Part shown: positions 12,910 through 49,300 of the stretch, piece after piece | Position numbering within the stretch: position 1 is the stretch's first letter | Layout: every line of letters starts with the position of its first letter | Assembly: GCA_037447605.1 (NCBI GenBank) | Contig: CM074815.1 | Location: forward strand, 372,001 to 436,000 | From: Zygnema circumcarinatum SAG 698-1b | Lineage: Eukaryota; Plantae; Zygnematophyceae | Direction: 5' to 3' | Length of the DNA: 64,000 nt | Notes under the pieces: model-generated | The model's input: the letters and a program-made list of their open reading frames with translations, nothing else | Database searches by the model: none | What the model was told of the DNA's origin: nothing | Program-made: the position numbers and the translations under genes

Positions 12910-15900
12910 TTATTTCTTTGTAAGAAGGCGCCCCTCTCCTGGAAGGTCCGTCCTCTCCCTCCCCTCCTTCGTGGTCCACGCCTCCCACACCTTCGACTTT
13001 GGCGGCGCTTTCACCTCTCCCAAGGGCGCTACAAGGCCCAGTTTTCCGTCGTCTATAACGGCATCTACCAGTCCGTACTCCACAGCCTCCCATGGGTTCA
13101 AAAAGTAATCTCTGTCGGTGTCCACCTCCACCTGCACACCTTTCGGTCCCCCCTTCAGAACACTTTTGCATGCCAAAAGTCACTTGTAATGCTAGGGTTG
13201 AGGGACTAAGGTTGAAGGGTGTAGGGTTTTGAAGGGCTCAGGGTTTAAGGATGTAGGGTTGTAGGGTGTAGGGTTTTGTGGTCCCAGAAGCTTTAGGGTT
13301 ACATGGTTTTAGGATTTTCAGATGGTTAGGGATCCAAGTTTAGGGTTAAGGGTCCTCAGGTTCTGAAGCATTCGAGTTTCAAATTCTTCGGGGTCGGTAG
13401 TCAGGGTTCCATGCAGTCGTTGAAGTTCAAAATAAGCCTTGAATGCATTGTAAAGCTAAAAAGAAAGAACTATGCATCATTACTCAAGCAATTATAAGGT
13501 TTTTAAAGTAAATATGTTCAGGATTTTAAGGAATTTGCGGCGACCTGCTTCTCATCTTTGCCGGTGATTCTCGACAAGATCTTGTTCAGCTTCACTTTGT
13601 GGTACATCATTTCGCGAACTTGCAGGCCGACATCAATGGCCTGCAGTCCGCCCCCCTCCAAATGGGTTTTTAGGGTTTTTAGGGTTCAAAGGGATGCAAA
13701 GAGAAGCAGCAGAAGCAAAAAAGCAGAAAGGGAAAGGGCACATCGCTTTACCCTATCTCAAAACAGACCAGTTTCCAAACCTTCTCGTTTCCAGACCGAC
13801 CTCACAAAGAACCCTCGCGGCGACTCTGAACACTCCTAGTAACCCCAAAGCAACCTAAACACCCTCAATTACCCTCTTACAACCCTAAAAACCTCTCACA
13901 TCTTTTTAACCTAAACGCAACCCTAAAACACCGTACATAACAATCCGACAACCCTAAAGCCATCCCAAACAACTTCATGTTGTTGTTGTTCTAGCAAGTT
14001 GTCCTCCTAGCAAGTTGTTGTTAGGGTTCCGCGCGACCCACCGACCCCCCCGCCCCTCCCAGCGGCTGATGGATCATGACCCGCGCGTTGGGCATGCAGT
14101 AGCGCTTCCCCTTCACGCCCGCCGCGAGCAGGAACGCGCCCATGGATGCCGCCAACCCGAAGCAGACCGTCGATACGTCCGCGCGGCAGAGCTTCATCGC
14201 GTCGTAGATGCCCATGCCTGCGCCAAGGCGGGATTGCAAGGTTTAGGGTTCGGGGTTTAGGGTTTAGGGTGTAGGGTTTAGGGTTTAGGGTTTAGGGTTT
14301 AGGGGTTTAGGAATTAGGGTTTAAGGTTTAGGGTTTAAGATTTAAGGTTTAGGGTTTAGGGTTTAAGATTTAAGGTTTAGGGTTTAGGGAAAAGGTTGCC
14401 GGTTTAGGGTTTTGGGTTTAGAGTTTAAGGTTTAGGGTTTAGGGTTTAGGGTTTAGGGCTTTAGGGGTTTAAGGGTTTAGGGTTTAGGGTTTAGGGTTTT
14501 GGGTTTAGGAATTAGGCTTTATGGTTTAGGGTTTAAGGTTTTAGGAAGGCGAGGTTAGGGTTAGGGCTGGTGGGGCTCTGGGGGGTGGTGGGGTTTGGGG
14601 GAAATTGAGGGGTTTTGGGGGTTTGTGGAGGTTTGTGAGTTGTGGGTTTTAGGACTTGTGAGATTTGGGGGTTTGTGGGGGTTTGTGAGTTGTGGGTTTT
14701 AGGATTTGTGAGATTTGGGGGTTTGTGGGGGTTTGTGAGTTGTGGGTTTTAGGATTTGTGAGATTTGGGGGTTGTCGGTTTTGGGGGGAGGAGGGAGGGG
14801 GGGGATGTGATGGAGGGAGAGAGAGAGGGGGAACAGCAATTGTGGAGGAAGGAGGGGAGATGGGGGAGGTGAAAGAGGGAGTGGGAGAGAAGGGAAAAAC
14901 CGAGAGGGTGGGGGGGGAGAGAGAAGAGGGGGGATGAAGCCAGAGAGGAGAAGCGAACGGGAGAGCGAGAGACAAAGCAGCGGTGGGGGAAGGGAAGTGG
15001 GATTAAGTGTGGGGAGAGAGAGGGGGGAGTGGCGCGAGGGAGATAGGGAGACAGAGAGAGGCGTCAAGGGACCTGGGGCAGAGGGAGAGGGACGAAGGAG
15101 AGGGAAGGGTATAGAGAGGGAGAGAGAGAGAGAGAGGGGGGCACGTGATAGCAACAGCAGTCTGTCTGTGCTCCCAACTCACCAATGACATCGTCTCTAA
15201 GTTGCTGCTGATAACTCGTTGCTCTGTTAAATCTAATTTTTCAACATGCATGGTCATCAGTTTCAGTTCAGTTTTCAGGACTAATTTGGGAATTGATTAT
15301 GCACCTGCGGTGACGGAACCGCCGGGAGAATTAATAAACAATTTAATGTCGGTGGTGGGGTCTTGCGCATCGAGGAGGAGCAGCTGACTGATGATTGCGT
15401 CAGCGCTGACATCATCAACCTGTTGCTCTCACAACTTCCCTAATCAGTAACCCTAAAACCCCAAAACTTGAAACGGCCTAATGACAACACCACCATGTAA
15501 AAAAAAAGCGTCCCCTCTAAAAATTTAGAACCCCAAATCCTCTAAACCCTCTGACATTCCAGAACCCCGAATGCCGAACCCATTTGAAAAAAAAAATCCC
15601 AAATCCCAAAACCCAAAAAATATTCACATTATATTTAGGATTAAAAAAGAAAGCATTTTCCAACCTGCCCCGCCAAAAAAACGATCCTCTGCCGCAGCAA
15701 CATAGCGTTGGGGTCCCACTCCATCCCAGGTTCTCCACCGCCCGAACCTTCCAGGAAGTTTCCTCCCCACGCTGCCCTGCAAATTCCCGCTGACCCTGAA
15801 ACCCTTCTCTCTCTGCAAAGCCCCTCCGCCTGCTCTGAACCCTTCCCAATTCTCCGCGCTGCTGCTAACCCCCTCCCCGTCCTCCAGAACTGAGAAGGAA

Positions 15901-15997: not shown

Positions 15998-16927
15998 GGC
16001 TGCGGGAGAGGGAGGAACGGGGGGGGGGGGGAGGGAGAGGGAGGGAGGGAGGGTCGGAGGGGAGGAGTCGAAAGAACTTGGAAGTGGGCCTTGGCACGTG
16101 TGAACACCCTCGTTGGGATTGTAAGAGCTACACTGCTTCAGTACAGGAGCGTACCAGCGTGTTACGTCACGTCACGTCACGTCGTGTCACGTCACGTCGT
16201 GTTACGTCGTGTCACGTCACAACAAGTACATATACTGTACTGAATGTACAATACGGTAAAAAAGAGACGACGGAAAATGGTAAAAAAGATAGCTTTTGAA
16301 AGAAACGTTCAGGCAAAAACGCAAATAATATTAAAAGAAAAAGAAGAAAATGAAGGGGAAGCAGGGGAATCTCCAACCAGAATTTTCTGCATGCTTTTGA
16401 ACCTGGAAAGTAAACAAGTATTGGAGTAAGAAATAAGTAAATAGTAGAGTATAGCAATATTCCAAGTTCAAAAAAGCATGCAGAAAATATTTCATGAGCT
16501 CCGAAGATCGGGAACTCTTCTCTGGCGATGAAGCGACGAAAGGGTAGGGCCGCGTACAATCACCGGTCAAGTTTGCTTCTTTACCAAAAGTTTCTAGGAT
16601 TTTTAGGGTTTTTATGATTTTTATGGATTTTCGGGTTTGTTTGAACGAAAGCGTGGGAAAGCTCGGCACTTCGCAAATAGATGATGGCAGAAACTTGACC
16701 AAAACAAACTTGCAAACAAAAAAACAGCTTGCAAAAGACCGCCGGATATTATTGCATGTAACACTAGCGACTAGCGACCCTCTGTAGCTTCAAGTTGCTT
16801 CCCACATGGGGATTGCTCCAAGTCTTTTGAATTAAGATTGGGTTTCCGACTTTGCAAAAGTACTGGAAACCAATCTTGAAACATGACAAGGCACACACTT
16901 AGTCCTGCATCTTTTCTATATCTATTA

Positions 16928-17131
16928 GGGGGAGTCAGACTTAGCCCGGAGTGTGCTAAATTCCCGAATTTAGTATACTAAAGTCAAAGTTTCGTGTACG
17001 AATTCCGGGTCGGGATCCGCGGCTCTGCCGAACCCAACTGTACTGAAATGCGTATCTAGCCCATGCTTAGATCCCCCGACAGGCTTACTAAATTGATTTG
17101 GCCATGTATTAAGTCTGACTCTGACTCCCCC
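16928..17131. mobile_element. MITE, 'GGGGGAGTCAGAC' terminal-inverted-repeat (TIR) family, copy 1
   Basis: Imperfect TIRs gggggagtcagactta ... taagtctgactctgactccccc; internal sequence is the reverse complement of the copies at 38500-38887. Confidence 0.75.
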
Positions 17132-17580
17132 TTTCGGTGTTTATTTTCAACGGAGAAGAAATTGATCCGCATCACCTTCTCCCCCTCGATGGTCTCCATC
17201 AACTGCAGCCGTTAGGCTTTTCGAGCCTTCGTTTTCCCCTTCACCTCTGTAATGAATCCCAACGACGAAACTATGAAGAAATTAGCATTGATAATAAACT
17301 TAACTTCCTTGGTACTCAGCTTTGGAGATGCATCATCAATCTTTTCAGATTTTTGAAACTTTCATGAAACGAACAGCAAGTTGTTATTCGAACCGGGAAA
17401 GTATGAAGCAAGTTAGCACTCCTGCTTTGCTAATCTGTGCTTATGCAGGCCTTGTTATGGCGAATGGCGATTAGAATTCTAAGTGCTGCCATCCTTACTG
17501 AAGGAAAAGAGCAGCTCTTAACCCTTAACTGCATGTAAACTCTTCAGCAACCTCTCACGATTGAGAGTGGGAGAAGGCTC

Positions 17581-19053
17581 CTAACCAGCACGAAGCTGCT
17601 CTGCAAATGATTGGAATTCTTCCCTGCACTCATTCACCCCCACACTCTGAAAGAAGTCAGCTCAAGCTCAAGGTCTTTTCACAGTACTCCCTCTTAAAGG
17701 ATCAACAAACATAGGCAATTCCAGCATGCTGTTTCACAAGCACTCCTTGGATAAAAAAATGAGATAGTATGCCCATTTTCCGCTGCCATCTCACATAAAT
17801 TAGTCATTTCAACTGGCAGTGCTTAAAGCATAATCCCTCACAGACACGCCAACTTTTATCCAAAAGAACCCCCAAAGTCTGAGTTCCGATGTTCACCATC
17901 TGCCGCATCAAAAAAGAATGAAAGTCCTCTAATCTTTGGACCTAATGTCACTCCCTTCAAGTGCCAAAAACTCTTTCTGATTTCGAATTCTGTTGGGGAG
18001 AATATTGATGTCAACTATTCTCACCCTTTGAAGAGGCTCCCTCCGCGCTCGTCCTGGAAGAGAGGCAAATGCATCAAGAAAACAGCATCCTGAAGGAGCA
18101 CAATTGCAAGGTACTGAAATAGCTCCAAAAGGTTTTCCGCCGCCATCTGCTGCTCCCTTGAAATACGTTTGTTCTCGATCTGCAAAGGACAATGACAGAA
18201 TTACACCATATAACGTGGCCCTCCCTCTCCCTCTCCCTCTCCCCTCCTCCCCTCCTCCCCTCCTCCCCTCCTCCNNNNNNNNNNCTCCCCTCTCTCCTCT
18301 CCCCTCTCCCCTCTCTCCTCTCCCCTCTCCCTCTCCCACTCCCTCTCTCTCTCTCTCTCTATCTCTCTTTCTCCTCCGCATCAGAAACTTTAACAGTTCA
18401 CGTACTCTAACAAGCCTGTGCTACCACAAGTGAAGCTTCATCAGATAGAATAACTCAAAGAAAGAGAGAGGCTTATCACTCCCCTTGTTTCCTTCACTTT
18501 CTGCTGAACTTACTCACATTAGCAACGCTTGCCCGCAGTTGCGGCAAGAACGGAAACACAGACTCCATGAGAGATGGTGAAGGGTCGACCCTTGTTCTCT
18601 CCAAAGGGTTTACTCTTGCACACGAAACATCAAAACCTGCAGACTTTTCTTGTGCTCTGCCACCCAGATCGTCTATGAACAACTGTGCAATCTCTTCCAT
18701 TGGAGTTTCATGGGGAGGTCGAATAAGATGAAACTGAAAGAAACTGTCCATGGAAGTGAAGGGTGCAAACACGGCCAAAATTGAGGAGCAGTGGACATTA
18801 ATCGCACCGACCACACTCTTAATGAAGGCGAGTTGCTCTCCAAATGAAGTTTCCTTTGTGAGGGACTTTTCAGAGGGCCACATCATCACCTTATCCCTGC
18901 CAAAGTAAAGTAAAGAAACTTCCCAACCGTGAGGAAGGAGAAAGAACAAAGAGCAGCTTTCTTTCCTTAACATCAGAACTTTACTTTGACACATGCCATG
19001 CTTTAGCATGATGCCTCCCTCATTCGAATCAAGTATGATGTGAATGAGTTCGA

Positions 19054-19117
<64 letters not shown>

Positions 19118-20964
19118 CGAGAGAGAGAGAGAGAGAGAAAGAATTATTACCCCGGAATGGCTGAGAAGGAGGACAACTTACCAAGTGTCAGAGACAAAGG
19201 GTACAGGTGGGGATTCATTACAGTACTGATATCGAAAAAAAAGATACCGTGCAAGCCAACCATGTGGACACAGAGCTGCATCTTTATGCCGGGCAATAAA
19301 CCCATATACTGGTTTCCTTTTGCCTCCTTTTCTCCTTTTGCAAGAGAGAAGTACTATGGGGACCCCATCACTGGGTTTTACTTGCACAGGGAGAAATTCG
19401 CAGAGTCTTGCATAGCGACCATCATCTTCTCTAAAGAACATTTGTACTCCGGCTGCAACTCTTGATGCAAATTTCAAACATTCAGCATTGACTTTCGTGG
19501 AGAGATGAAGGATGAGGTTGCATGGACCAGGATCGAGGTATTCAGTAGTACGGTCGCGAGTATCACTGCAAAGGAAAGGAGAAAGTTTTTTTGAGATGTT
19601 TTCGCAGTTCTGCAAAGGAAAGGAGAAAGAAAGGTCTCCTTGAAGTTGATGTTTTCGCAGTTCCATTATCAGCCGAGAACTACAGAAAGTTTCTTGAGTG
19701 AAGTAGTAGAAAGCAATTCAAAACTGCGAGACTAGGGGCACACGCAAAGGAGAAGGAGAAGGTAAGGGCACCTACTCAGCCCACTGATTCTGCCTATGAT
19801 ACCATGCAAAGTTCACCATCGTTCGAAGCAAATCCTCTTTGTATATGTTTCCGCCACAACTGAGACCTGTAGCTTTGCGAACCTTGTACTGAGCATCTTG
19901 GAAAGCAAAAATATACAATCTCAAGGAATGGAGTTTCACCTGCAAGCCATTTGGAACATTCACAGGATTCAGATTCTAAAAAGACGAGTTAGAAGAGAGG
20001 TGGAAGCAAAACAAATTAACAAAGTAATGGGCATAGAATGGGGCTTCTGTGAATAAGACTCAAAGGAACATCACATTATTTTTCTCCAGTGTATAGGAAA
20101 TGAGCTCTACTTTCCTTGAAACTTTTTGGGAAGTGGCGGTATTACCTGGTTTTCAGGTATACTGAAGAATTTGTCAAAAAGAAAGGCTCCCACTCGTGAG
20201 GGGTGCGGAATTGGCCGACAACCCAATTCATTGCACCATAGAATGAATTGGCGCACACGGTAATAGTGAGCAGCAGACGTTGCTTCCTCAAAACTTTTCA
20301 ATTCTATTTCCCTACAGGCCCGGTCCATCTGCTGAAGGATGATCCTGTAAGCATACAGAGAGAATGAAACGGCTCCATGCATCAAATAAAGAGAAAGAGA
20401 AAAGACAACTATTCTTGATTGAATCCAAGAGAAAATAAAGAAAAAAAAACACAAATAACTTACATAACAGGTGTCAAAAGGTCTCTAGTCTTGATTGTTT
20501 AAATTAAGAGAAAATAAAGAATAAAGCACAAATAACTTACATAACAGGTGTCAACAAGCCTCTATTCTTGATTGTTTAAATTAAGAGAAAATAAAGAATA
20601 AAGAAAGCACAAATAACTTACATAACAGGTGTCAACAAGCCTCTATTCTTGATTGTTTAAACTAAGAGAAAATAAAGAAAAAAGGACAAATAACTGACAT
20701 AACAGGTGTTATTGGATGGTCCGGATCATCATCACTGTCCTCCGGATTGGATAGCCCCTCTCCCTCAGGGCACATAAGATTGATGACGTCAGCATCAGTC
20801 ATCACTCCTCCATTGAGCCTCTTGATGCCGTCAGGCTTGTCCCATTGGTCAAGAGAGTCGCCCTCCCCCTCACTGATTGGTGAACTTGAAGTTGAAGCAG
20901 GACCATTAGAATTCTCGGTTGCATCTACAAACATCCTGACAGAGATCGAAGTGTTGGGAGCCAT
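17581..20964 (-). CDS. Crypton/Ndc10-II-like tyrosine-recombinase-fold protein, ~541 aa, probably catalytically inactive
   Basis: Seven GT-AG exons in phase with no internal stop: 20964-20699, 20344-20146, 19975-19776, 19565-19182, 18896-18518, 18179-18025, 17623-17581 (3' end tentative). Motifs YGFIARHKDAALCPHGWLARYLFFRY, SAGF..LERTRVDPSPSLMESVFPF, AAENLLELFQYLAIVLLQDA, EEFQSFA. Confidence 0.75.
20385..20710. repeat. ~70-80 bp tandem repeat (~4 copies) spanning the exon 1/intron 1 boundary of the Crypton-like gene
   Basis: aagagaaaataaagaa..cacaaataacttacataacaggtgtcaa..ctattcttgattgtttaaa repeated. Confidence 0.85.
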
Positions 20965-22848
20965 ATCGCCACCCTTAAGAATTTTTTTACCACCTGCATG
21001 TTGGCAGGTTGCAAAACAGCACGAGGAAAAGGGATAAGGATAGAAAAATGATGATTTCACAAACCAAAAACAGAAACAGAAAAACAAACACAAAAAATGA
21101 TGATGATGAATGATGAAATGAAATGATTTATGTTATTCAACGATTGGCTCTTACTCTTGCCCTTGACCTAGCCGTTTTGTTTTTGTCCTCAAATCATCTG
21201 CTCAACTTGTCAAGCCGACAAACAACAAGTAGATACCTATTATTTCACTATTGTTTGATATAATTAAAACCGAGGAACCATGGAATCGTGAAACAAGTCA
21301 AGTCAAGGCAAGAGCCTCTGACGAGGACCACGAGAACGTGCAACGATAACTTGCCATGACCAAAATTTGATTGATCTCATATTCGTTTTAAAACAAAAAT
21401 TTGAGAGGATCATGATACTCAGCCACACGTATTTCAGAATCCGAAAGAGTGTGCCGAAAGAGTCTTCAAATGATGAAGAAATGGAGCAGACATGCAAGTG
21501 AGGCAGTAGCAAACTTCAGCTAAGAAACAAAACCCAATAAAGCCAGACAGTCACCTTGAAGCTCTTTTCTGCACTGAAAATGGACCCCTTCACTGCACCC
21601 TCTCCTGTTGCAGCTATCAAAATCAGGTGAATGCAGGTCTGTCTGTAGGTCTGACAGTTTTTGACTGCATGTCATTCACATGACCTGCAGTCAAAAACAA
21701 TCATATGCTTGCATGCCCTTCCTTTCATGCTTAGTTTTAGATTCAGTTCAGAAGTATCTTTCTTTCTTTTTGAACTGCATTGACGCCTTCTTTGGCAATT
21801 CACTGTAATGCAGGACGCCGCGGAAGCCGCTTTCAATACAGGTGGCAGGCAATAGCAGCTGACAACAGGTAGCGGCGAAGGAGACGGCGCCAATGGAGCG
21901 ACCAAATGAGTGCAAACGCTGCGAGAACACAGTAAAAAGATGGCTTTACGAAAGACTAACTGTTTCTGATACTCGGCCCAATTTTTTATTTGGGATGACC
22001 AAAAAAAAAGGGGATGTGGGGGCATATGGAACACCTTCAGAAGGAGTTTGAGGGGGTACTATGGGTGAACGATGATATGTGATGTGCCCTGTTATGCGTG
22101 ATAATGGAGAACAGGATAGATTGGAATCGCGCTTTGCTGAGAGAGATTGAGATTTTGAGAGAGAGAGAGAGAGAGAGAGAGTGAGAGAGATTGTGAGTGA
22201 GATTGTCAGTACTAGGATAGGGAAGAGTTTGTAACGTGTGAAAATTAAAATTAGGTTTAGATACGAGCTTCCCTTGCTCCGTCGCTATGATCCTTCACTT
22301 CTTCTGATGAATTTGACAACTTTTAGGGTAAATTGAAAGCAGTTTCTATTGGCGTAGACTTTGACGAATGCTTGTCGCTTGCTGCTGCAGATTATTCGCA
22401 GATTAAAGGACGCTCCTTTCTTGCATCTAATCGGTCTCAATGGCAATATGGGCCAGAAAGGATATTGTGGAAACTGGTTAAGTAGCTTCTTGTGAATCCC
22501 AACGCATGGACCTCTCTCAGAGATGCTGTCATGGAAAGCTCTCAGGCCATGGAGGATGCGGAGCGAGCAACAGTTTTTAGGGGACTCGTCATTCAAGAAA
22601 GGAAGAGTAAGAGGCACGCGTGCTACATGTTGAAAACGACTAAATTTGAAAGCATTTTGAATAAGTAAGGATTCGAACATCTACAAAAAGTCATCTCAGA
22701 CATAGTTTCTAGAGAATTTCAAAATCTTCTTCCTATCAAGAACTTCAATCAGGATGAGTTTCTCGATCCAATTTTGAAATGCAGGGACTGTTCGGGGAAA
22801 GCTGCTAGCTGTGCCCATTCAAGACGCAACATCACAAGGTACTAAAGA

Positions 22849-23020: not shown

Positions 23021-26000
23021 CTACTTCAAACTCTCCGAAACGACCACGCCAAGCTCATCGACCCCCTCCTCTTCCTCCTCCTCGCTCCCACTCCACACCT
23101 CATCACTCTCACTTCCACTCTCCCCCCACTCCTGCCTGCTCTCCCCCACCTCCCCTACCCCCCCCTCTCCCCCTCCCCCACCCTCTCCCCCTCCCTCTCC
23201 CTCTCCCTCCCCCCCTCCCTCCCTCCACCCCTCCGGAAACAACGGCTCCAACGCCTTCATCAAAACCTCCGCCTGCCTCTCCATCTGCCCCACACACTTC
23301 CCCCAATGCTTTGCCGTCTTCCTATCCACCTTAAACCCTCCCTCCTTCATCTCCGCCGCCACGCTCAATATGGCGATTTGGAGAGTGTCCGGGGAGACCG
23401 CCGCCCTTGAGAGGAGGCCCGAAAGGAGGCAGTGGAAGACGGGGAGGTCCGGGCGGAGGCCCTGGGCAAGGAGGCGTCCGTACAGTTCGAGGGCCTTCTC
23501 GGGGTAGGAGGCCCAGGCCCAGCCCTGCATGAGGGCGGTGAAGGTGCGGAGGTTGGGGGGGACGCCGGAAAGCTGCATCTCCTCAAGGACGTCCATGGCG
23601 CGCTGCGAGGGAGGGAGGGNNNNNNNNNNGAGGGAGGGAGGGAGGGAGGGAGGGAGGGAGGGAGGTAGGGAGGGAGGTAGGGAGGGAGGGAGGGAGGCAG
23701 GGAGGGAGAGTGGGAGGGAGGGAGGGAAGGAGGGAGGTGAGAAAGAGGGAGAGAGGGAGGGACGTGAGAGTGAGGGGGAGAGCGGCGGAGGAGAGGGAGG
23801 GAGGGAGGGAGGAGGGTGAGGAATACAGGGAGGGAGGAGGGTGAGGAATAGGAGGGCGAGAGGATGGTGAGGGAGGGGGCTGGGAGATGGGGGGGGAAGG
23901 ACAGAGGATGGAGGGAAGGAGGGAGGAAAGAGACAGGCAGGGAAGAGAGGGTCGGAGGGAGGCAGGAAAGAGGCGGGAGGGAGGGAAGGATGGACGAGAG
24001 AGAGGAAGGGAGAGAGAGAGAGAGAGGGGTTTAGGGTTTTTCCATGGTTGAGACCTGCATATCCCCTGCCCTGCAGCAGGCCGCTATGAGCGCAGTGAAG
24101 GTGTACACGTCCGGTTGAATGCCCTCCGCCTTCATCTCCTTCACGAGGTCTGCTGCCTCCCACATGTCCCCTCGCCGAGCCCACCTGCAGGACAAGGGCT
24201 TGTTTGGTCACGTAAGATGACTAAACAAGGGTTGGTTAGCAAAAGATAGGGAGGGTTTGGCCAAAGCTACGGTTTAGCCAAAGTTCAGTTTTAGTCAAAG
24301 TTAGGGTTTGGAAAAGGTAGGGTTTAACTGAAGCTAGTCAAAGGGTGTAATTAACACTCGTACTCTAATGAGGTTTCTGGCCCCGACTTCCTTCCCACAC
24401 GCTCCCTATCCCTAAACCCTGAACCACAGCACCCAGATCCTAAACTCTAAAACTCTTATTTTAACCCATCATCCTGAACCCTAAACGGAAAACTCGAAAC
24501 ACACTCCGTACTCCCTACTCCCTCTACGCTCCCCTCTTCTACCCCCACCCCCTACACCCATCACCCCTCGTCCCCCAACCCCCCTCTCTCTCGTCACCCA
24601 CCACCTCCCCCCCCACCTCCCTCCTTCCCCCTCCCCCCTTCCGGCCCCCCCTGTTTCTCCCCCCCCCCCCCCCTTTTCTCCACCCCACTCCCTTTTCCCC
24701 CCTCCTCTCTCTTCCCCCTGCTCCCTCCCTCCCTCCCTCCCTCCCTCCCCCTCCCTCCCCTCCCCTCCCTCCCTCCCTCCCTCCCTCCCTCCCTCCCTCC
24801 CTCCCTCCCCCCTCCCTCCTCCCTCCCTCCCTCCCTCCTCCCTCCCCTCCCCTCCCTCCCTCCTCCCTCCCTCTCCCTCCCTCCCTCCCCCTCTCACCCG
24901 TCCACTAGGCAGTTATACAGTCTCCTCGTCGGCGGTCCCCCCCCCTCCTCCCTCATCGCCCTCACTGTCCCCAGCGCCGCCTGCATCCGTCCCCTCCCCG
25001 CGGCCGCCCTCGCGAGCGCCCCAAAGGCCGCCGCGTCCGCTTTAAGGCCCTGCCGCCTTAGTAGGCGGAACTGGGCCGCGGCGGCGGGGAGGTCCCCCGC
25101 ACGTGCGAACCCCGCGACAAGGACCGTGTGGGACCGGACGTCGGGGACCAGTCCCGCGCGGGGGAGGGCGGAGAACACGGCGGAGGCGGCGGACATCTGG
25201 GAAGGGGGAAAGGAGGGGGGGGAGGGGGGGGGGAGGGGTTTAGGGTGAGGGTTTAAGGTTTAGGGTTTAGGGGGAAGGGTTTAAGGTTTAGGGTTTTAGG
25301 GGACTAAGGGTAGGGTTTAGGGGTAGGGGTTTAGGGTGAGGGTTTAGGGTGAGGGTTTAGGGTGAGGGTTTAGGGGTAGGGTTTAGGGGTAGGGTTTAGG
25401 GGTAGGGTTTAGGGGTAGGGTTTAGGGGAGGGTTTAGAGTTAAGGGATTAAGGGATAGAGTTTAGAGTGAGGGTGCTGGTGAAGGTTTAGATTTTAAGGT
25501 TTAATGGTTTAGGGTTTCAGCATTAGGGTTTCAGCATTAGGGTTTCAGCATTAGGGTTTCAACATTAGGGTTTCAACGTTAGGGTTTTATCATTAGGCCT
25601 TCAGCATTAGGGTTTCAACATCAGGGTTTTCCGCCGGGTCATCGCACCTCTCCCCGCATGACATAGCCGTGCATGAGCGTGTTGTAGACGGGCGTGGTGA
25701 CGGGGCAGCCCTTGGCCCTCATCTTCTCCATCACCTCCACGGCCTGTTCCATGCTTCCGTTCCGTGCCCATCCCGCCACGAGAATGCTCATAGTGTACGG
25801 AGTGGGGCCCTCCTTGGCCGTTTCCATGCGGTCCAGTACGGCCATGGCCTGTTCCATGCGGCCGCAACGGCAGAGCACATGGAGAAGGCTGTTGAACACG
25901 GTGGCGTCGGGTTCTATGCCCTCAGTTTTCATTTGTTGGAAGAGCCGTTCAGCAGAACTGGCGTCACATGTTCTCGCATATCCGCTGATGAGCATTCCGT

Positions 26001-27756
26001 ACATGTGACGGTTGAGAGAGACTCCGCTCCGTTCCATGTCGGAAACGAGCTCGAGAGCTTTTCCCATGTTGCCCTCCTGCAGAAAAATTTCAGTTGAAAT
26101 CTGTTGAATACTGTGAATATCTGTCAAGTCTGCCGTCTGAAGGTTCGAAGAAGGCTTTTTCTCATCGGTTATTCTTTCTCTCCTCCCTCTCCCTCTCCCT
26201 CTCCCTCGCTCCTTCCCTCTCCCTCTCGATCTCCTGCTCCCTCTCTTCCTGCTTCTCCCTCTCCGCTCCCTCTCCCTCCGTCACCCTCTTTCCCTCCCCC
26301 TCCCACTTCTCCTCGCTCTCTCCCTCCCTCAACCTCTCTCCTTCCCCCTCTTCCGCTTCCTCTCCCTCTCCCTCTCTTCCTCTCCGTCCCCTTCTCCTGC
26401 ACTCTTCCCCTCTCCCTCTCTTTCCCTTTCTCCCTCTCCATCTCTCCCTCTCCCTCTCCCTCTCTCCACCTTTCCCTCCCTCTCCCTCTCTCTTGCCCAG
26501 CAAAGGCGAGAAAGAGGAGATACCTGCGTGTACATGCTGAGGAGGGAGCCGAATGTTCGATCGGAAGGAGCGAGTCCCATGGCCTGAAAAAAATATTACA
26601 AAAAAACTATCAGAACTGTTCAAACGGACATAGAACACCCCGTGGAGACTGTGACTTACTTCTCAGCTCCATTCTTCAAAAAGTATCGGAGGGATTACCC
26701 TCTTTCTTCTTTCATTCGGAAAAATTAGGGTTTAGGGTTAGGGTTTCAGGCTAATTTTCAGGGAAAGCAAATTCAAGAACCTTGTTTTGAGTTTCCAGTT
26801 TTTTAAGTCTAGGGTTAGTTTAGAACTACAGGTTCAGGCTTAGGATTTCAGCTCTATGGTTGGACACCCTTATACTCCATAACTCCGAGGTATTTGAACA
26901 CTGTACGGAGGTTTAGAATTAGGGTTTAGCGTTCAGGGTTTAGGGTTTACGATTTAGGGTTTCGGGATTAAGGTTTAGGCTTCAGAGTTTAAGGTTTAGG
27001 GTTCAGAGCTTAAGGTTTAGGGTCAAGGATTTAAGGCTTAGGGTCTAAGGTTTAAGGCTCGGGGTCTAGGGTTTAAGGATTAAAGTTCAGGGTTTAAGAT
27101 TTAGGGTTTAGGGTTTAGGGTTTAGGGTTGCGGTTTAGGGGTCAGGGTTGAGGGTTTAAGGTTTAGGGTATAGGGTTGAAGGTTTAAGGTTTAGGGTTTA
27201 AAGTTTAGGGTTTAGGGTTGGAGTTTAGGGTCAGGGTTGAGGGTTTAGGGTTAAGGATTTAGGGTTTAGGGTTGGGGTTTAGGGGTCAGGGTTGAGGGCT
27301 TAAGGTTCAGGGTTGAGGGATAGGGTTTAGGGTTTAAGGTTCAGGCTTTAGGGTTCAGGGTTCAGGCTTTAGGGTTTAGGCTTGAGGGTTTAGGGTTTTG
27401 TCGGCGACCCTGATGCGCGCGAGCAGCGCCGCGGCCCGCGCCCCCTCCCCCTTCCGGCAGTGCGCCGCGAGGAGCGCGTTGAAGGCGCTCAGCGGCGCCT
27501 GCAGACCCTCCCGCTGCGCCGCCGCCAGGACCTCCTCCGCGCGCGCCACCTGGCCCACCTTGCTGCCACCCCCCCCCCGTGCTTCTGCCACGTGTCACCC
27601 TCTCATGCTTCTGCCACGTGTCAGACTCGTGATTGTGCCACGTGTCAACACATCTTCAACCGAAAGCATTGCAACCTGAGGAAGGACAATTGTTGCGCTC
27701 GCCGCCCCCCTCCCCCCTCTCCTTATCTCTCACTCTTTCCCCCTCACACTGCCGCC

Positions 27757-27791
<35 letters not shown>

Positions 27792-29419
27792 ATCTCTCTC
27801 TCGTCCCCTCCCTCCCCCTCAGCGAGAGTACCAGAAAGCATCGACGAGATTGCCCGCCACAAAGGCGGAGGGCGGCAGACCGGAGCTCCGGAAACGCTTG
27901 TACCACTCCTCAGCTGCCCTGAAAAAAAAAACACGCCAAAAAGAAAAAAGAAACGTAGTTCATAAACTTTTTTCAAGAAAAGAAAAGTACGAAAAGTCAC
28001 ATCACATCCAATCGACTCCAACAACGCAAGAAAATGACAAGAAATAAAGAGACCAAGAGTCCCAAAGGTAAACCAAAATGGGGTTCGGGATGACTGTAAG
28101 AAAAAGGAAATTTTGGGGCCTGCTATAATGGGGGCTAAATGGGGCATACACGGGGTCCTGCCGCCGCGCGTATCCTGAAATGAGAGTGCTGTAGGAGCCC
28201 TCCGTGAGGGCGAGGCCGTCGCGTTCCATGTCAGTTACGCACGCCTCCGCTCCGTGCATGTCGTCCGCCATCACATACGAATGCATCAACCTGCACACAT
28301 GGAACGGGGAGGGGGGGGGGGGGGGGGNNNNNNNNNNAGGGGGGGGAGGGGGGGGGGAAGAGTCGGGGGAGAGAGCGGGGAGGAGGGGAGGAGAGGGGGG
28401 GGGAGAGTGGGGGGAGAGAGTGAGGGGGAGGGGAGGAGAGGGTGGGGGGAGAGTGGGAGGAGGGTAGTGAGGGAGTGGCGGGGAGGAATGAGGGGGGGGG
28501 AGAGTGGGAGGGAGGGAAGTGAGTGAGTGGTTGGGGGGGGAGAGTGGGGGGGGAGAGTGGGGGGGGAGGAGTGGGGGGGGACAATGGGGAGAAGGGGAGT
28601 GAGGGAGTGGTGGGGGGGGGGTTGTGAGAGTGGAGGGAGGGAGAGAGTGTGGGGGAGGGGTAGTGGGGGAGGGAGAGAGAGTGTGGGACGGGCGGGAGAG
28701 TGCGGGGGGATGAGTGCTGGGGGAGGCAGAGAGTGGAGAGAAAGAGAGAGAGAAAGAAAGAAAGAGAGAGAGAGAGATTGAGAGGGAAAGTGGCAGAGAG
28801 AGATAGAGAGTTGAGAAAACGACGAGAGTTGTGGCAAAGGGAGAGAGTACTCTAAACCCTAATCCCACAAACATTCACCCTACACCATATACTGTGAACC
28901 CTAACTCCTCAGCCCAAAACCGGAATCCTAACCCTTGACCCCTTATCCTAAACCAATCCTAACCCAACACCCTAAACCTTCAACCCGCACTCCTCACCTA
29001 AACCTAAACCCTAAACCCTCAACCCTCAATCCTCAACCCTCCCCCTACACCCTCTCCCCCTACACCGCCTCCCCCTCTCCCTTCACCCCATCCCCAATTC
29101 CTCTTAAACCGTAAACCCTGAACCCTAACCCCTAAACCCTAAACCCTAAACTCTAAACCCTAAACCCTAAACCCTAAACTCTAAACTCTAAACCCTAAAC
29201 CCTAAACCCTAAACCCTAAACCCTAAACCCTAAACCCTAAACCCTAGGCAGAGGGCCGCCCAGAGGCGTGCACGCACGCGGTGTAGGAGTAGGTCGTGGG
29301 TTCGATCCCGAGCGCGCGCATGGCCTCGAAGGCGCTGCGCGCTCTGTGCTTGTCGCGGCGCCGCGCGTGGAAGCGGACGAGGAGGGAGAAGTCCCCGCGC
29401 TTGGGCTGCCCGGGGAGAA

Positions 29420-29466
<47 letters not shown>

Positions 29467-30656
29467 AAAGGGTATGTGGGGTGCAGAGAAGCCCAGACCA
29501 AATAGATGGTTAGACGAGCTTAACGGAAATTTTGACTAATGTAAGGAAAATTTCAAAGCCCAAAACCCGAGACCCTACACCCTTAAACAATTAAACCCTG
29601 ACCCCCAGATACTGCATTTTGAAGTTTGAACCCTAAGCCCTAAAACTTCACCTTCTCAATGGCTGCAAATGCCGCCATAACCCTCGGCAGGCTCCCCCCC
29701 TCCCCTCCCCTCTCTTCCAGCACCCTCCTAAAGGCCAGCCGCGCCTCGTAACGCTTTTCATGCCATGGAGAACGGTGGGAGGGAGAGAAAGCCTTTTCCC
29801 GCCCTCCTCTCCCTCCCTCTCTCCCTCCCTCTCCCTCCCCTCCTCCCTCTCCCACTCCCTCTCCCACTCCCTCCCTCAACCTCCTCTCCATAGTCGCCTG
29901 CATTTCCCTCTCCCGTCGCCCGTCGTCCAGCTTGACGCGCAGCGGGCGGCCCTGCCACGTGGCGCCATGTAATTCGCGGACGGCGCGGCAGGCTGCCACG
30001 TGGCGCTCTTCGGGAGTGCCCCCCCCGAAGAAGGCGAAGGCGAAGCCGTTGTTGCGTTCCGGGTGGGTGTGCGAGCCCACGAGGATGAGCTGCTGTACGG
30101 ATCCGTACGGCCGCAGGAGGGCAAGGAGGGCGGGCTTGGAGGCGGAGAAGGGGAAGTTGGAAAGGACGAGCTTGCCGGGGTGGCCCTGGTGGGGGAGGGA
30201 GGGGGAGGGGGAGGGGGACGGAGAGAGGGAGGGGGAGGGGGACGGAGAGGGAGAGAGGGAGGGGGAGGGGGAGGGAGAGGGATTGCGAGATGCAGAGGTA
30301 AAAGGGGAGGGAGTGGGAGAGAGAGAGGGGGAGGGGGAGGCAGAGGGAGGGAAAGAGGCAGAGGGAGGGAGAGTGGCAGAGGTAAAGGGGGAGGAAGAGG
30401 GAGAGAGGGAGACTTTGGCACGTTCTCTCTTATTTTCAAGCCTCTCCGTCTGTGGGGTTTTTGGGAGGTGAGTTTCTATGGGGGGGGTTAAGGAGGAAGG
30501 GGGAGGGAGGGAGCGGCGGAGAGAGGGAGGCCAAGTCTGTCGCTTTGGGAGAGGGAGATAGAGGGATAGGGAGGAAGAGTGGGAGAGAGAGAGGGAGGGG
30601 AGGAGAGGGAGGCGGGGGAGGAGGGGGGAGGGGGAGTGAGGCGCTGAGAGGGACAT
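23021..30656 (-). CDS. PPR4: RRM + pentatricopeptide-repeat protein, PPR4 ortholog (plastid rps12 intron 1 trans-splicing factor in land plants)
   Basis: Exons ~30656-29652, 29405-29278, 28290-28153, 27913-27829, 27549-27409, 26583-26524, 26077-25648, 25197-24898, 24184-24055, 23604-23021 (internal bounds approximate). RRM ERNNGFAF..LHGATWQGRPLRVKLDDGRR, WHEKR, P-type PPRs, GWAWASYPEKAL, FHCLLSGLLSRA, TAKHWGKC. Confidence 0.88.
25238..25630. repeat. Telomere-like (TTTAGGG and variants) intronic array in PPR4
   Basis: ggtttag, ggggtagggttta and cagcattagggttt sub-repeats. Confidence 0.85.
26725..27400. repeat. Degenerate (TTTAGGG)n intronic array in PPR4
   Basis: Several hundred bp of 7-bp periodic ggtttag/ggttcag/ggtttaa. 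Confidence 0.85.
28850..29247. repeat. (CCCTAAA)n intronic array in PPR4, opposite orientation to the other two
   Basis: Near-perfect aaaccct tandem at 29130-29247. Confidence 0.9.
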
Positions 30657-35892: not shown

Positions 35893-37077
35893 TTATATCT
35901 GTTGCGGTATTAAGTGCACTTTAAACTTGGCCATAAAAGCAGCGTCCGTACTTTTGAACAAGGAATACAGCGCATACTCCTTGTGATCAATTCCTGCCTC
36001 CACCAGTGCCCTATGCCTCAGCTTCAGCCGCTTTTCAAGGGAGAGATTAAGTAACTCCGGATAGTTGAGAATCTCCTCTTTGCTACGGCCCATCTCAGTC
36101 AATAAGAAGTCAAGCTTGGACTTAACAGTATCCCAAGAGCTGCTAAGCATTAAGGGCCTCGATTTCACCATTTTCAAGGCAGGAAGGTCCCCGAAGTGCT
36201 GCTCCAGCTGCCTGTACGTGTTATCCATTGTGTTTCGTGGTGCTAATAAAATCGTTCGGTGATTCTGCAGCACTTTCTGAGCTCTATCGGGCCCGAAAAT
36301 CGCCTCTAATCCCGCCACAACATCCTTGAAGTGATGGCCCTTTCTTCTAACGATGTTAGGGAAAAGAAAGAGCAAATCCTTTCTTGCGTCAGGGAAGGTT
36401 GACCTCACAGCTTCAACTCCCTCCTTTATTGTTTCAGGACTGCAGGAGAAAATGGTTGGGTAGTTTTCCAGCATAGTGCCTGTGAGAGGGACGCCTAACT
36501 CCTTCCATAGACGAACCTTCGCCTCAAGAGTCTGCACACGGTTTCCCAAAATTCCCGGCGTTTTTCTTATCACCTTCCCTAAGTTCGTCACCTTCAAGGT
36601 GTTCAGAAGGAACTCGATCACGCCTTCCTGCCTCGCATCTGGAGCGAGGAGGAAGTTTGTGGTCAAGGAAGTGCGCTTTAAGGCGCTGAAAAAGTCGTGG
36701 GAGTTGACCCCATGGCTCTTGAAGAAAGCTGCTTTAGGAAGGATATGCTTATAGCCCCTTATAAGGACACTCTTCTTCTTATAAACAAGGCGGTGGACAT
36801 CCTGCTGCGTGCATGCTAAGCTCAGGAGAGCGTCCACTGCTTCTTGGAGAGCCCTCGTCGAAACCGCAGTTTCTTCCTCAGCCACGGTGGCTATGCCTGC
36901 ACTCGCTTTTTCAAGTTTTTTTCCCTCCTTGCTGCTGCTGCTGCTGCAGTATCCATGGCGCCCTTGAAGGGACTGAGTGTAAATGATCTGTTCAAGGGAT
37001 GGATGGTACCATGGTAGGCGGAACGGAGATCCGTTCCAGACGGTCCGGCGAAAAAAAGGAAGAAAGGAAGCCGCCAT
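35893..37077 (-). CDS. mTERF family protein, intronless, organelle-targeted
   Basis: ORF with mTERF-like repeats (VIRKTPGILG, MLENYPTIFS, VKSKLDFLLTEMG, EILNYPELLNLSLEKRLKLRH, LFKSTDAAF); first ATG at 37077. Confidence 0.85.
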   Translation of the reverse strand: MAASFLPFFRRTVWNGSPFRLPWYHPSLEQIIYTQSLQGRHGYCSSSSSKEGKKLEKASAGIATVAEEETAVSTRALQEAVDALLSLACTQQDVHRLVYKKKSVLIRGYKHILPKAAFFKSHGVNSHDFFSALKRTSLTTNFLLAPDARQEGVIEFLLNTLKVTNLGKVIRKTPGILGNRVQTLEAKVRLWKELGVPLTGTMLENYPTIFSCSPETIKEGVEAVRSTFPDARKDLLFLFPNIVRRKGHHFKDVVAGLEAIFGPDRAQKVLQNHRTILLAPRNTMDNTYRQLEQHFGDLPALKMVKSRPLMLSSSWDTVKSKLDFLLTEMGRSKEEILNYPELLNLSLEKRLKLRHRALVEAGIDHKEYALYSLFKSTDAAFMAKFKVHLIPQQI

Positions 37078-38043
37078 GGCGCGGACTTCTGAAGCATGCG
37101 GCCGCTGATAGAGAGTCACTTCCTCATTTCTTGTCGCAGAAGGCTTCCAGCACTCAACCCTAATCTCTTGGACCCAACTCTGACCCTAACCCTTACCCTA
37201 GTGCTAACCCTAAAGCAAACCCTAAACCTAACGCAAACCCTAACCCTAACCTTAACCTTAAACATAAGCATGCATGCATTTGGCATTCCATGGTGATATT
37301 AATGCACATTTCTCCCCCATAATCACCAAATGAACTCTTATCATTACTATCAAAAAGGGAAGTTAGAGGCGCACTGAGGAATGCGAGGCTGCAGAAGTGC
37401 AGAAGCTCCGGCTTACTGTTCTTCCCTCAATTACATATGTAAACAGTTAACAGTTCCAGTTTCAGTAAACAGTCGCAGTTCCATGTTTCCAAAACACGGA
37501 ACTGTTACCGTACTGTGCAAAGACGACACTCCGGCACTAGAACGGAACTGAAACTGGAACACTAACTGCCCGTATACTATGCGATTGCATGGAACGGGCC
37601 ACACGTGCCGCGCCCTTCAAACGAGCGCCTGGAAAGGCTCCCCCTTGGAGCAATTTGAACTTTCTTGGGTCATGTTTTGATGAGTGCAACGGAAACTGAA
37701 CACACACAGAACACGGCAGTGCGAGATGTACGGAAAAAACTGCATGTCACGGTCACGGTCATTTTCAGTGAAATTTCGATTTTTTGTACGAGAATCGAAC
37801 AAACAAAGACAAACCAAAAGAACTTTTGGATATACAAACGGTAACAATGTTCAATCTGCCTTAGAATCAATACTGCCCTCCCTCCCTGGTCTGCTGTCCA
37901 AGCACAGACTCTCCCTTTCTTATCACCTTATTCTTACCAGCATCAACGTTTTCATCTCTGTAATGTTTCGCTCCATTTACAGGGATGCTCTTTCTTAACA
38001 GTTCGCCCTCTCTCTCTCTGATTTTCGAGGGAAGAAAATGGCA

Positions 38044-38499: not shown

Positions 38500-38887
38500 G
38501 GGGGAGTCAGACATTGACCATGGTCAGGCGAATTAACCATTGGCTACGTACGCACTTCGGTACGGCAGTGTACGGCGGAGCCGCAAATCCCGACCCAGAA
38601 TTCGTCCCCGAAGCTTTGACTTCTAGTATACTGTAATGTACTAAATTCGGGAATTTCGTACGGCCATGGTCAATGTAATTCCCCCCTATTAGGGGGAGTC
38701 AGACCTTGACCATCGCCAAATCAATTTCGTAAGCCTGTCCAGCGAATTAAGAATTGGCTAGGTACTTATTTCGGTAGGGCTGTGAACGGCGGAGCCGCGG
38801 ATCCCGATCCGGAATTCGTACACGAAAGAAGTGACTTTTAGTATCAGGAATTCGGGAATTTCGTAAGCGATGGTCAAGGTCTGACCC
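38500..38887. mobile_element. Two adjacent MITEs of the 'GGGGGAGTCAGAC' family (38500-38686 and 38692-~38887)
   Basis: TIRs gggggagtcagacattgaccatgg/ccatggtcaatgtaattcccccc and gggggagtcagaccttgaccatcgc/gcgatggtcaaggtctgaccc; shared core ggagccgc..atcccga..gaattcgt..aattcgggaatttcgta. Confidence 0.8.
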
Positions 38888-46382: not shown

Positions 46383-49300
46383 TGTAGCGTAACGGAGCTG
46401 CGTTCGGCGGATCCGCGTCCGTTCAGTTGTACTTGACGTATGCCTCTTCCGTGTCACGGATCAACGGAATCCAGGAGCTGCCAACGGAGATTGAGAGAAG
46501 GCGGCGCCATGCGTTGGCGGCCCACGGAACAGCACACCATCTAGCAAGGCGCACTCGGGAACACCGCCTGAGGCCGCCGATTATCATTCGTTGACCTATC
46601 CGAAGGCTCCACNNNNNNNNNNTACCCTCATGATCCGGCGCATCCCATTGAGCCGGCGGTGAATCCTCACATACCAGATGTTTCTCGTCCAGGATATCGG
46701 GCTCCTTATTCCGATCGCACACCCGAAGAGAGAGAAGCTGCCAGGGCCGATCTGCGCCGTCGGATGACAGAGGCAGGGGTTCCAGAGGGCGTCTGTCTTG
46801 CCTGCGGCCTGAATCATAATCCGCGGCTGCGTTGCGGACCATGGACCTGCACCTTCTGCCAAATCACGGGACATGATGCCCGTGTGTGCATGCGGAGACT
46901 CTCAAGTGAGAAGGCCCGAAAAGGGAAAGAGGCAGCTGCAGGGAGCTCACCTGCAGAGATCACCTTCATGGACATGCTCCCGGCTACTCCCACACCACCG
47001 AGAACTCCGGCTCCCTTTCGCCCGCCTCCACCTCCTTCACCCGCTTACACCATCCTGCAACGACCACCTATCCATCTGCACCCCATGGACTCCCCCTCCC
47101 TGTCAAACGTATTGGGTGCTGAGCCCGATCCTGCTGCCCGATCACGCACTGCCCAGGTTGCCGCGGCATTTCAACCGGCTTTGTCAGAATCCCCCATCAC
47201 TTCTGAAGCTGATGCTCAGGCCCGGATCGCCGAGATTGCAACTGCCTTGCGCAGGCTCCCTGTCAACCGAAGCGATCCTCATTCTCATCCCCTGCCATTC
47301 CTCCCTGCCAATGTTAACGGCGCCAGTTCCTCGGGCACGGCTCCACCGGTCGCCACCCCTGTCCGAAGAACTTCAGTCATCCCTCCCTCCACGGGTCATC
47401 CCTTGGGATCCCTGCCTGAGGAGGAAATTGAAGATCTCAATGAAGAGGAGCCGACAGCGGCGCAGCCAGAGCCGACGCCACCGGCGACCGAAGAGATGCA
47501 CGTCAACCCTCCACATCGCCCTCGGGCAGCCCGTTTCTACCCCCAAGCAGCCGATCGTCGACCACCCCGTGAGGCGGCTATCACGATTGAGCGCATGGTT
47601 CATCAACTCATGAGGGAACAAGGCTAAGATCGGCGTACCTTGTCACGGTTGATGCAGCTTACAGCGCGGGTGCTGCGGCGTGGTTATGCCGACAGTCTGA
47701 GAGAGAGGAGGCCACCTCACGGCCTCCCGGTTCTATGGCATCTCCTCGGACGTCCCCTGCGCCAGCCGATATCCACCACACATGGCGTGGCGCCTCCCTC
47801 GGACCCGATTTACGGCTCTCCCGCCATCCTCCTCACCATGGGATTCAGATGCCACTCTAGTCCCCACACTGCTTGTCGCGTGTTGTCCAATGTAGCCTTG
47901 GCTCCGGGTATCCAGCAAAGCCACTTGATAGAGCACAGGAGCCATGCGCACAGTTCTGTCCAAGCCTGTGATGAAGGCTGCAGGGGTTAAGTTGGACAAG
48001 ACACTTGAGCCCATTCCCCGATATGTGGGGGTTGAAGGGAGCTTACATGAAGGATTGGGCAGCGCCCAAGTGGTCATCAGTCTTGGCGAGATGGGAGCCA
48101 CAGTGAATGCAGTCATCACGGCCGCTGAACACTATTCTATCCTGCTGGGCTCAGATTGGCTCATCGCGATGGGAGCACAAATCGACTTTGCTTCGCCTCG
48201 AAATTTGCACTTGTCTGGCGGCGGGGCCGGACTGCTCCTTACATCATCCCACCGAGTCCCGCACCTCGCCTTCCCCAAAGCGCCCGCCGCGGCGCGGGTC
48301 TCCACCGAGGAGATCACCATGTACCATTCGGTCGGCAGCCCCCATTCTTCTTATGGATCGGCCAATTCTGATACCGATGACGAGACTCCCCCTCCTGCTC
48401 CTCCGAGTCCAGCTCTCGGTGCGCCGACGGAAGAACTGTTGCCGCCAGTGATACCTGCACCCAGCTTTCCCCCACATGAGACCATCGGTGATGAGGAGTG
48501 GTTGGAAATAGAGGGGCAGATGCGATTAGGGCCTGCAGTCCTCTCAGACCCGATCAAGCATTCTCAACTACGCCAAGTGCTGCGCCGAAATCACCTAGTT
48601 TTCGCACGACATTCACTCGACATCGGCAAGACTCACTTGATTGAGCACCACATCGATACGGGGGATGCGCCTCCCGTGATGACCCTGACTCCCTACCGCT
48701 TTTCCGCCGCGCAGCAGGCCGATGTCGAACGACAGATCGACGAGAACGTGGCTGCCGGATTGATGGAACCTGGAGAAGGGCCGTGGGCCAGCCCGGCCGT
48801 TCTGCCCCCAAAGCCGGATGGCACACTCCGCTTCTGTGGGGACTACCGAAAACTGAATGCAATAACGAAGTGGGATCCCTACACATTACCGGATGTGGAC
48901 CTGATTCCTCCCTGATCTCCCGATGGCCGGTGGTTCGGCATGACATGCAATCACTTACATGGGGTGTCCCCTACTTGGCCGAGCCTTGTCGCTGCAAAGA
49001 CAGGGCTGCCACCGTAGCGCTTTGTCGCGATGGGCAGTGCTTCACGTGAGCCTGAAATTCCAGTGGGGCTCACCAGCGCGGCAACGGGTGTTCGGCCTAT
49101 GGTACCTTCTACGGAAGCCTGCGTGGATGATGCCGATCCCACAGCAGGACTGGTCCTCCCACCTGCAGCTGCACCGTGACCAAGTCTGCAACGCTTATCA
49201 GTCTTGGCGTCGAGATTGCACCCAAAATTACAAATGGGGCCACGGGGAATCCCCTCATCTGGGCACTTTCGGCATCAATGGCCTGAAACCATCACTCGAC

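Follow-up and report, generated by a model that had tools for sequence, protein, structure and literature searches.

A candidate domesticated Crypton recombinase gene with a dead catalytic centre in a conjugating green alga

Cases of Crypton domestication have already been reported from yeasts as well as from animals (PMC3212892, PMC13465315). The closest described system is Ndc10/Cbf2 of the yeast CBF3 complex, whose domains 1-2 (PDB 4aco, 3sqi; PF16787) have a CryptonF-type fold with the catalytic site lost, a combination that the algal gene described here appears to share. Ndc10 contacts DNA mainly, and largely without sequence specificity, through domain 2, while domain 1 serves to bind partner proteins; the CBF3 partners and the point centromere are known only in budding yeasts (PMC6077249). 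The yeast proteins Gcr1, Msn1, Hot1 and Cdg1 were also domesticated from CryptonF-type elements, and GCR1_C is the sole domain common to these four proteins and CryptonF (PMC3212892). The animal DUF3504 genes (QRICH1, ZMYM2-4, WOC, KCTD1 and KIAA1958) represent a further case, in which hosts have retained a Crypton recombinase domain that is dead. In a literature search of incomplete coverage, no publication was found that reports Cryptons, or genes derived from them, in streptophyte algae, nor one that reports a tamed, non-cutting Crypton recombinase in green plants or algae. Here we describe a candidate for such a gene in Zygnema circumcarinatum, located in a 64-kb window that comprises the whole stretch of DNA analysed.

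Family, fold and relatives

An earlier note on this DNA had assigned the gene to the Crypton/Ndc10 family on the basis of short motifs, all of which are present. Exons were searched singly (Table 1), and a homolog, P0001, was used in place of the joined protein for full-length searches and folding. Pfam analysis exon by exon revealed weak matches of exons 4 and 6 to NDC10_II and of exon 2 to an integrase SAM domain, and P0001 exceeded the NDC10_II cut-off. When a profile of 104 Crypton proteins was used, P0001 matched with an E-value of 3.5e-44, and exons 4, 5 and 6 each scored separately. The AlphaFold model of P0001 (pLDDT 68) had Ndc10 (4aco) as its best fold match (E 3e-7; Z 22.8, rmsd 3.8 over 301 residues), a match that was obtained with the homolog's model, folded with a Crypton alignment, and hence is not independent of the sequence match. 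After Ndc10, the next fold matches were to Flp, XerH and Cre. In the Atlas shape search, the best match was an NDC10_II cluster in which Streptophyta is the phylum recorded most often, so such sequences are already in databases. Pfam, the Crypton profile and the P0001 fold all agree with the family assignment of the earlier note. No match to GCR1_C was detected in the six frames of the window or in the P0001 transcript.

An exhaustive search with exon 4 revealed one close relative, P0001 (about 65-66%, E 1e-48), alongside fragments of Cryptons at about 32%. The P0001 frame, 526 aa long and carried by transcript-like contigs of runs SRR8128904/5/8, matches exons 1-6 in order with about 57% amino-acid identity; because it was found only on these three consecutive runs, it would appear to be the gene of another organism and not a paralog. 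Word-index protein searches, which were length-limited, revealed no second close homolog, metagenome scans found no loci and PDB sequence searches with single exons gave no matches. The Atlas feature search was blank with exon 5 and gave only matches below 0.9 with P0001. Two further candidates, P0003 and P0004, were discarded as spurious matches. The nearest intact relative of the gene was an intron-split Crypton with the full catalytic set on L007, a glacier-metagenome scaffold (sample GROS21, positions 1-2081, GC 0.39) that carries P0002 and possibly comes from an ice alga. L007 was 23-35% identical to the gene over exons 2-6, with introns 4, 5 and 6 sharing codon and phase, and it continues into a longer C-terminal part, whereas the gene and P0001 both stop soon after the last conserved helix. 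P0008 (L004 187-1869), a transcript from runs SRR221002xx, represents another RGDD-type-clade Crypton with His, Trp and Tyr in place.

Phylogenetic trees were built per exon with a subset of fungal rows and a midpoint root. The gene and P0001 paired together (100/100, 100/99) on a long stem with short tips (stem lengths 1.34 and 2.83 in the exon 4 and exon 5 trees), and in two exon trees the terminal branch of the gene was about twice that of P0001 (0.38 versus 0.19 and 0.69 versus 0.27). In the exon 4 tree the pair shared a clade with the L007 protein and with further Cryptons of non-fungal type, separate from fungal CryptonF (100/100); the same grouping with the L007 clade was weak in the exon 5 tree (81/93).

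Gene structure, transcription and genomic setting

The earlier note had described seven canonical GT-AG exons joining in phase into a stop-free product of about 541 aa, and the coordinates, phases and frames determined here agree with that description. The splice-site listing in combination with phase arithmetic gave seven coding exons on the minus strand, with a length of 1626 nt (541 codons plus stop). All introns were GT-AG with phases 2, 0, 2, 2, 0 and 2, and every exon was stop-free in its own frame. Exon joins 1-5 rest on the listing and the phase arithmetic, and the read evidence covers the 3' junctions. A strong acceptor was identified at 20993, which precedes the ATG by 29 nt with the frame open between, and a further exon probably lies upstream of the exon 1 ATG. 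For exon 4, an acceptor at 19609 creates a stop, so 19565 was preferred; the exon 4 acceptor is duplicated exactly over 20 nt, with only the downstream copy in frame. A 77-bp tandem repeat of 3.6 copies spans the exon 1 donor and intron 1 and has multiplied the exon 1 donor region. Each of its copies carries a donor-like site, and the GTAAGT of the inner copies is stronger than the in-frame donor.

Table 1. Coordinates of the gene, its lost catalytic residues and neighbouring features in the window
Feature	Position	Strand	Remarks
Exon 1	20964-20699	minus	counted from first ATG; variable start, then acidic motif kept in P0001; 59% identity over 51 codons
77-bp tandem repeat	20427-20709		3.6 copies
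Exon 2	20344-20146	minus	core-binding (SAM-like) domain; weak Phage_int_SAM_4 match, E 0.021; 51% to P0001, 35% to L007
Exon 3	19975-19776	minus	remainder of core-binding domain and linker
Exon 4 acceptor, duplicated	19585-19566, 19629-19610		20 nt each
Exon 4	19565-19182	minus	first half of tyrosine-recombinase catalytic fold; NDC10_II E 6e-4; Crypton profile E 5e-17
Arg-I codon, kept	19432-19430	minus	exon 4
Exon 5	18896-18518	minus	dead catalytic centre
His to Ala	18775-18773	minus	exon 5
Arg-II to Ala	18766-18764	minus	exon 5
Trp to Glu	18709-18707	minus	exon 5
Tyr to Phe	18679-18677	minus	exon 5
Intron 5	18180-18517	minus	contains N gap 18275-18284 in CT-rich repeat
Exon 6	18179-18025	minus	Crypton/Ndc10 C-terminal helices, LLQDA motif; NDC10_II E 0.0098; profile E 4e-8; spliced contigs
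Exon 7	17623-17530	minus	final 13 codons, stop 17583-17581, 51 nt UTR; coding part 17623-17581
Exon 7 joints	17622/18024, 17246/17530, 17246/17586		from spliced contigs
Exon 8	17246-17075	minus	3' UTR in main form; short basic tail in 551-aa form
MITE-like repeat	16920-17120		related copies near 38500-38860
ACGTC/CACGT (G-box-like) tandem array	16158-16220		about 160 nt upstream of ClpP start
ClpP gene, intron region	14240-14541		43 copies of telomere-like 7-mer
PPR gene	23021-30656		long, RRM-like N-terminal part; upstream of Crypton-derived gene
mTERF gene	35893-37119		single exon
LTR-retrotransposon-like frames	46659-49609		decayed gag/protease/reverse-transcriptase, by eye

Transcription was examined with reads over 16300-18215. 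Runs X7, X8 and X18, from three studies, skipped 17624-18024 with GT-AG ends, and DNA run X2 did not; these three runs have no RNA label on record, and we infer from the precise GT-AG skips that they are RNA. The 3'-UTR intron (17247-17529) was also skipped in all three runs, with X18 additionally containing it unspliced. A second form in X8 used a donor after 17586 that bypasses the stop and gives a short basic tail and a product of 551 aa. Both spliced 3' forms end no more than 23 codons past exon 6. The spliced contigs set the exon 7 acceptor at 17623, a weak site without a pyrimidine tract, and ruled out 17644 and 17646. Over exons 2-4 the non-DNA runs contained 0.54-0.74 of words, which lies near the exonic share of 61%. 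As judged at its 3' junctions the gene is transcribed and spliced, and the exon 6-7 joint was present in spliced contigs from all three studies and absent from the DNA run. DNA depth was flat at 36.5 over exons 6-7, with one contig and no variants at 90% likeness; at that likeness, and over these exons, the gene is single copy, and dispersed near-identical copies were not found. The transcript ends, in exon 8, inside a MITE-like repeat of high copy number. This repeat has short inverted ends of the GGGGGAGTCAGAC type and is bordered by TTA/TAA-like flanks; by eye we take it to be Tourist/Harbinger-like. DNA depth reached 19,000 over this repeat compared with 36 for single copy.

Intron 5 contains an assembly gap, the length of which cannot shift the frame because it lies inside the intron. 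A single DNA contig stops at 18208, short of the gap. The two sides of the gap would nevertheless belong to one gene, because P0001 is collinear across the exon 5/6 joint (exon 5 aligns up to residue 446 of P0001, exon 6 from residue 449), the intact Crypton of L007 is interrupted by an intron at that codon and in that phase, and spliced contigs from three runs depart from the window exactly at acceptor 18179 with 350 further letters.

Ordinary host genes, ClpP and PPR, lie on either side of the gene, and no second Crypton frame was identified in the 64-kb window. A window repeat search for terminal repeats gave no telling result, 6-bp repeats being unrecognisable from a single copy. No Pfam match was found for the frames at 21675-22680, nor, at E 0.05, for the protease-region frame of the retrotransposon-like segment.

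Catalytic residues and selection

Each of the residues Arg-I, Lys, His, Arg-II, Trp and Tyr was kept in 96-100% of those Crypton rows that have a residue at the position, and His, Arg-II and Trp were conserved in 96-98 of about 100 Cryptons. Catalytic residues were read against L007 in an alignment without gaps. This analysis revealed Arg-I in both the gene and P0001. The H-x-x-R box reads HLFR in L007, AVFA in the gene and DVFA in P0001, and Trp is replaced by Glu in both the gene and P0001. The nucleophile Tyr is Phe in the gene and is kept in P0001. The position of the catalytic Lys falls in a basic hairpin of exon 4 and is ambiguous. A profile alignment moved the His box by one residue, and there was still no His or Arg there. 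The earlier note had read a retained Arg-I, AVFA at H-x-x-R and Phe in place of Tyr; comparison with L007 bore this out residue by residue and supports a dead catalytic centre.

Selection was estimated from 463 aligned codons of the gene and P0001, giving a pS of 0.75 (95% 0.68-0.81, saturated), a pN of 0.28 and a dN/dS of at most 0.23, not near 1; the comparison is of one pair, with P0001 represented by transcript contigs. The chance of a neutral frame staying stop-free was at most 3e-5 at d=0.25. Identity peaked at 73-80% near Arg-I, the RH..CP helix and the old His box, which are the former DNA-facing active-site segments, and exons 3-4 were basic. Because both genes are truncated and both carry the changes at Arg-II and Trp, the enzyme would have been dead before the gene and P0001 split, so that selection cannot serve self-transposition. 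Taken together, the data from this pair support purifying selection on the protein after catalytic loss. The earlier note had left domestication and recent inactivation side by side; the shared losses in P0001, the saturated silent sites and the protein identity of about 57% support domestication.

Possible functions and comparison with known systems

With moderate confidence, we favour a domesticated Crypton recombinase that would act as a non-cutting DNA clamp or a chromatin/transcription cofactor placed by partners. An intron-rich Crypton of an alga-associated clade would have lost H-x-x-R, Trp and the GCR1_C tail, evolved fast for a while and then been fixed as a single-copy host gene, the protein of which would retain the core-binding domain and the catalytic-domain fold. 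In tyrosine recombinases and in Ndc10 D1-2, duplex DNA is enclosed between the core-binding domain and the catalytic domain. The most likely mode of action would be a backbone grip by Arg-I together with the basic hairpin, largely independent of sequence and not followed by cutting. Partner proteins, possibly via the conserved acidic N-terminal motif, would place the clamp, which may act as a chromatin or transcription cofactor. We infer a non-cutting clamp because conservation peaks at Arg-I, the RH..CP helix and the His box, because exons 3-4 are basic, and because Ndc10 and the recombinases provide a precedent; DNA binding, nuclear location, partners and role are all predicted properties of the protein. 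The main stop, 51 nt upstream of the UTR intron and close to the usual decay threshold, counts against this explanation, as do the longer terminal branch of the gene and its additional loss of Tyr.

Several other explanations were weighed against the same evidence. Dead or repurposed tyrosine-recombinase folds (MrpR/YopR and SroF, which act as phage regulators) among the fold matches are consistent with a host-kept Crypton repressor, a dead protein that would bind Crypton ends or join active tetramers and thereby block excision or integration. We consider this doubtful, since the per-exon identity of about 23-35% to L007 and the missing GCR1_C make shared ends or interfaces questionable, and steady conservation in the face of saturated divergence is more in keeping with a stable function in the host than with an arms race. 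It is unlikely that the gene was once domesticated and is now decaying or under relaxed selection in this lineage: its longer terminal branch, the additional loss of Tyr, the weak exon 7 acceptor, the UTR intron and the absence of the gene from three 2017 runs would fit such a course, but the frame is open over all of its 541 codons, and three studies show precise splicing at the weak acceptor. Residual non-standard activity, such as a Tyr donated in trans or a topoisomerase-like reaction, is extremely improbable. Flp, the next fold match after Ndc10, donates its Tyr in trans, and P0001 keeps both Tyr and Arg-I; however, the nucleophile position here is Phe, and His, Arg-II and Trp are missing from both proteins. 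If the gene were instead an accessory component of an element that is still mobile, with an active Crypton moving it in trans and selection working on the element, this would account for intron positions inherited from an intact Crypton, and the terminal direct repeats of Cryptons, at only 6 bp (PMC3212892), would be unrecognisable in one copy. That origin is highly improbable given the single-copy DNA depth, the lack of variant contigs at 90% likeness, the lack of another Crypton frame in the 64 kb and the host genes on both flanks.

The favoured domesticated recombinase is probably a tamed DNA-binding protein resembling yeast Ndc10, and the gene is similar in size to the Ndc10 N-terminal domain. 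The two share only 13% identity, however, and the gene keeps Arg-I and lacks both GCR1_C and Ndc10 domains 3-5. It ends after the D2-equivalent at 541 or 551 aa, whereas Ndc10 has about 950 aa with dimerisation and Scm3-binding domains 3-5. An Ndc10 ortholog was rejected because the gene falls in a separate intron-rich Crypton clade and GCR1_C is missing; by its sequence, the gene would have originated independently of Ndc10 from the alga-associated Crypton clade. It is very unlikely that conjugating green algae arrived independently at an Ndc10-like chromosome factor, acting as a clamp at the centromere, at the kinetochore or in DNA looping, in convergence with budding yeast.

Compared with CryptonF transposons, the gene shares a recombinase domain of the NDC10_II type and introns, with introns 4-6 placed as in L007, but it lacks H-x-x-R, Trp, Tyr and GCR1_C, is single copy and has termini that were not found in the window. 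An active CryptonF element was rejected on the loss of the catalytic set save Arg-I, the missing GCR1_C and the lack of dispersed copies at 90% likeness. The animal DUF3504 genes differ in being CryptonA-derived, in belonging to another Pfam family and in that most of them are fusions with other domains; the P0001 model gave a weak fold match (Z 6.5) to QRICH1 from structure 9hjt, the Zincore-ZFP91-DNA complex. Gcr1, Msn1, Hot1 and Cdg1 share GCR1_C, whereas the algal gene dropped GCR1_C and kept the recombinase fold. Crypton domestication itself being known, the new parts are the algal host and the GCR1_C-less form, which, if true, would amount to an independent Crypton domestication in the green lineage. 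Because the gene keeps the recombinase fold while lacking the GCR1_C domain common to the yeast cases, it would offer a natural test of whether a dead recombinase fold alone is a useful module, as has been proposed for DUF3504 and Ndc10 D1-2.
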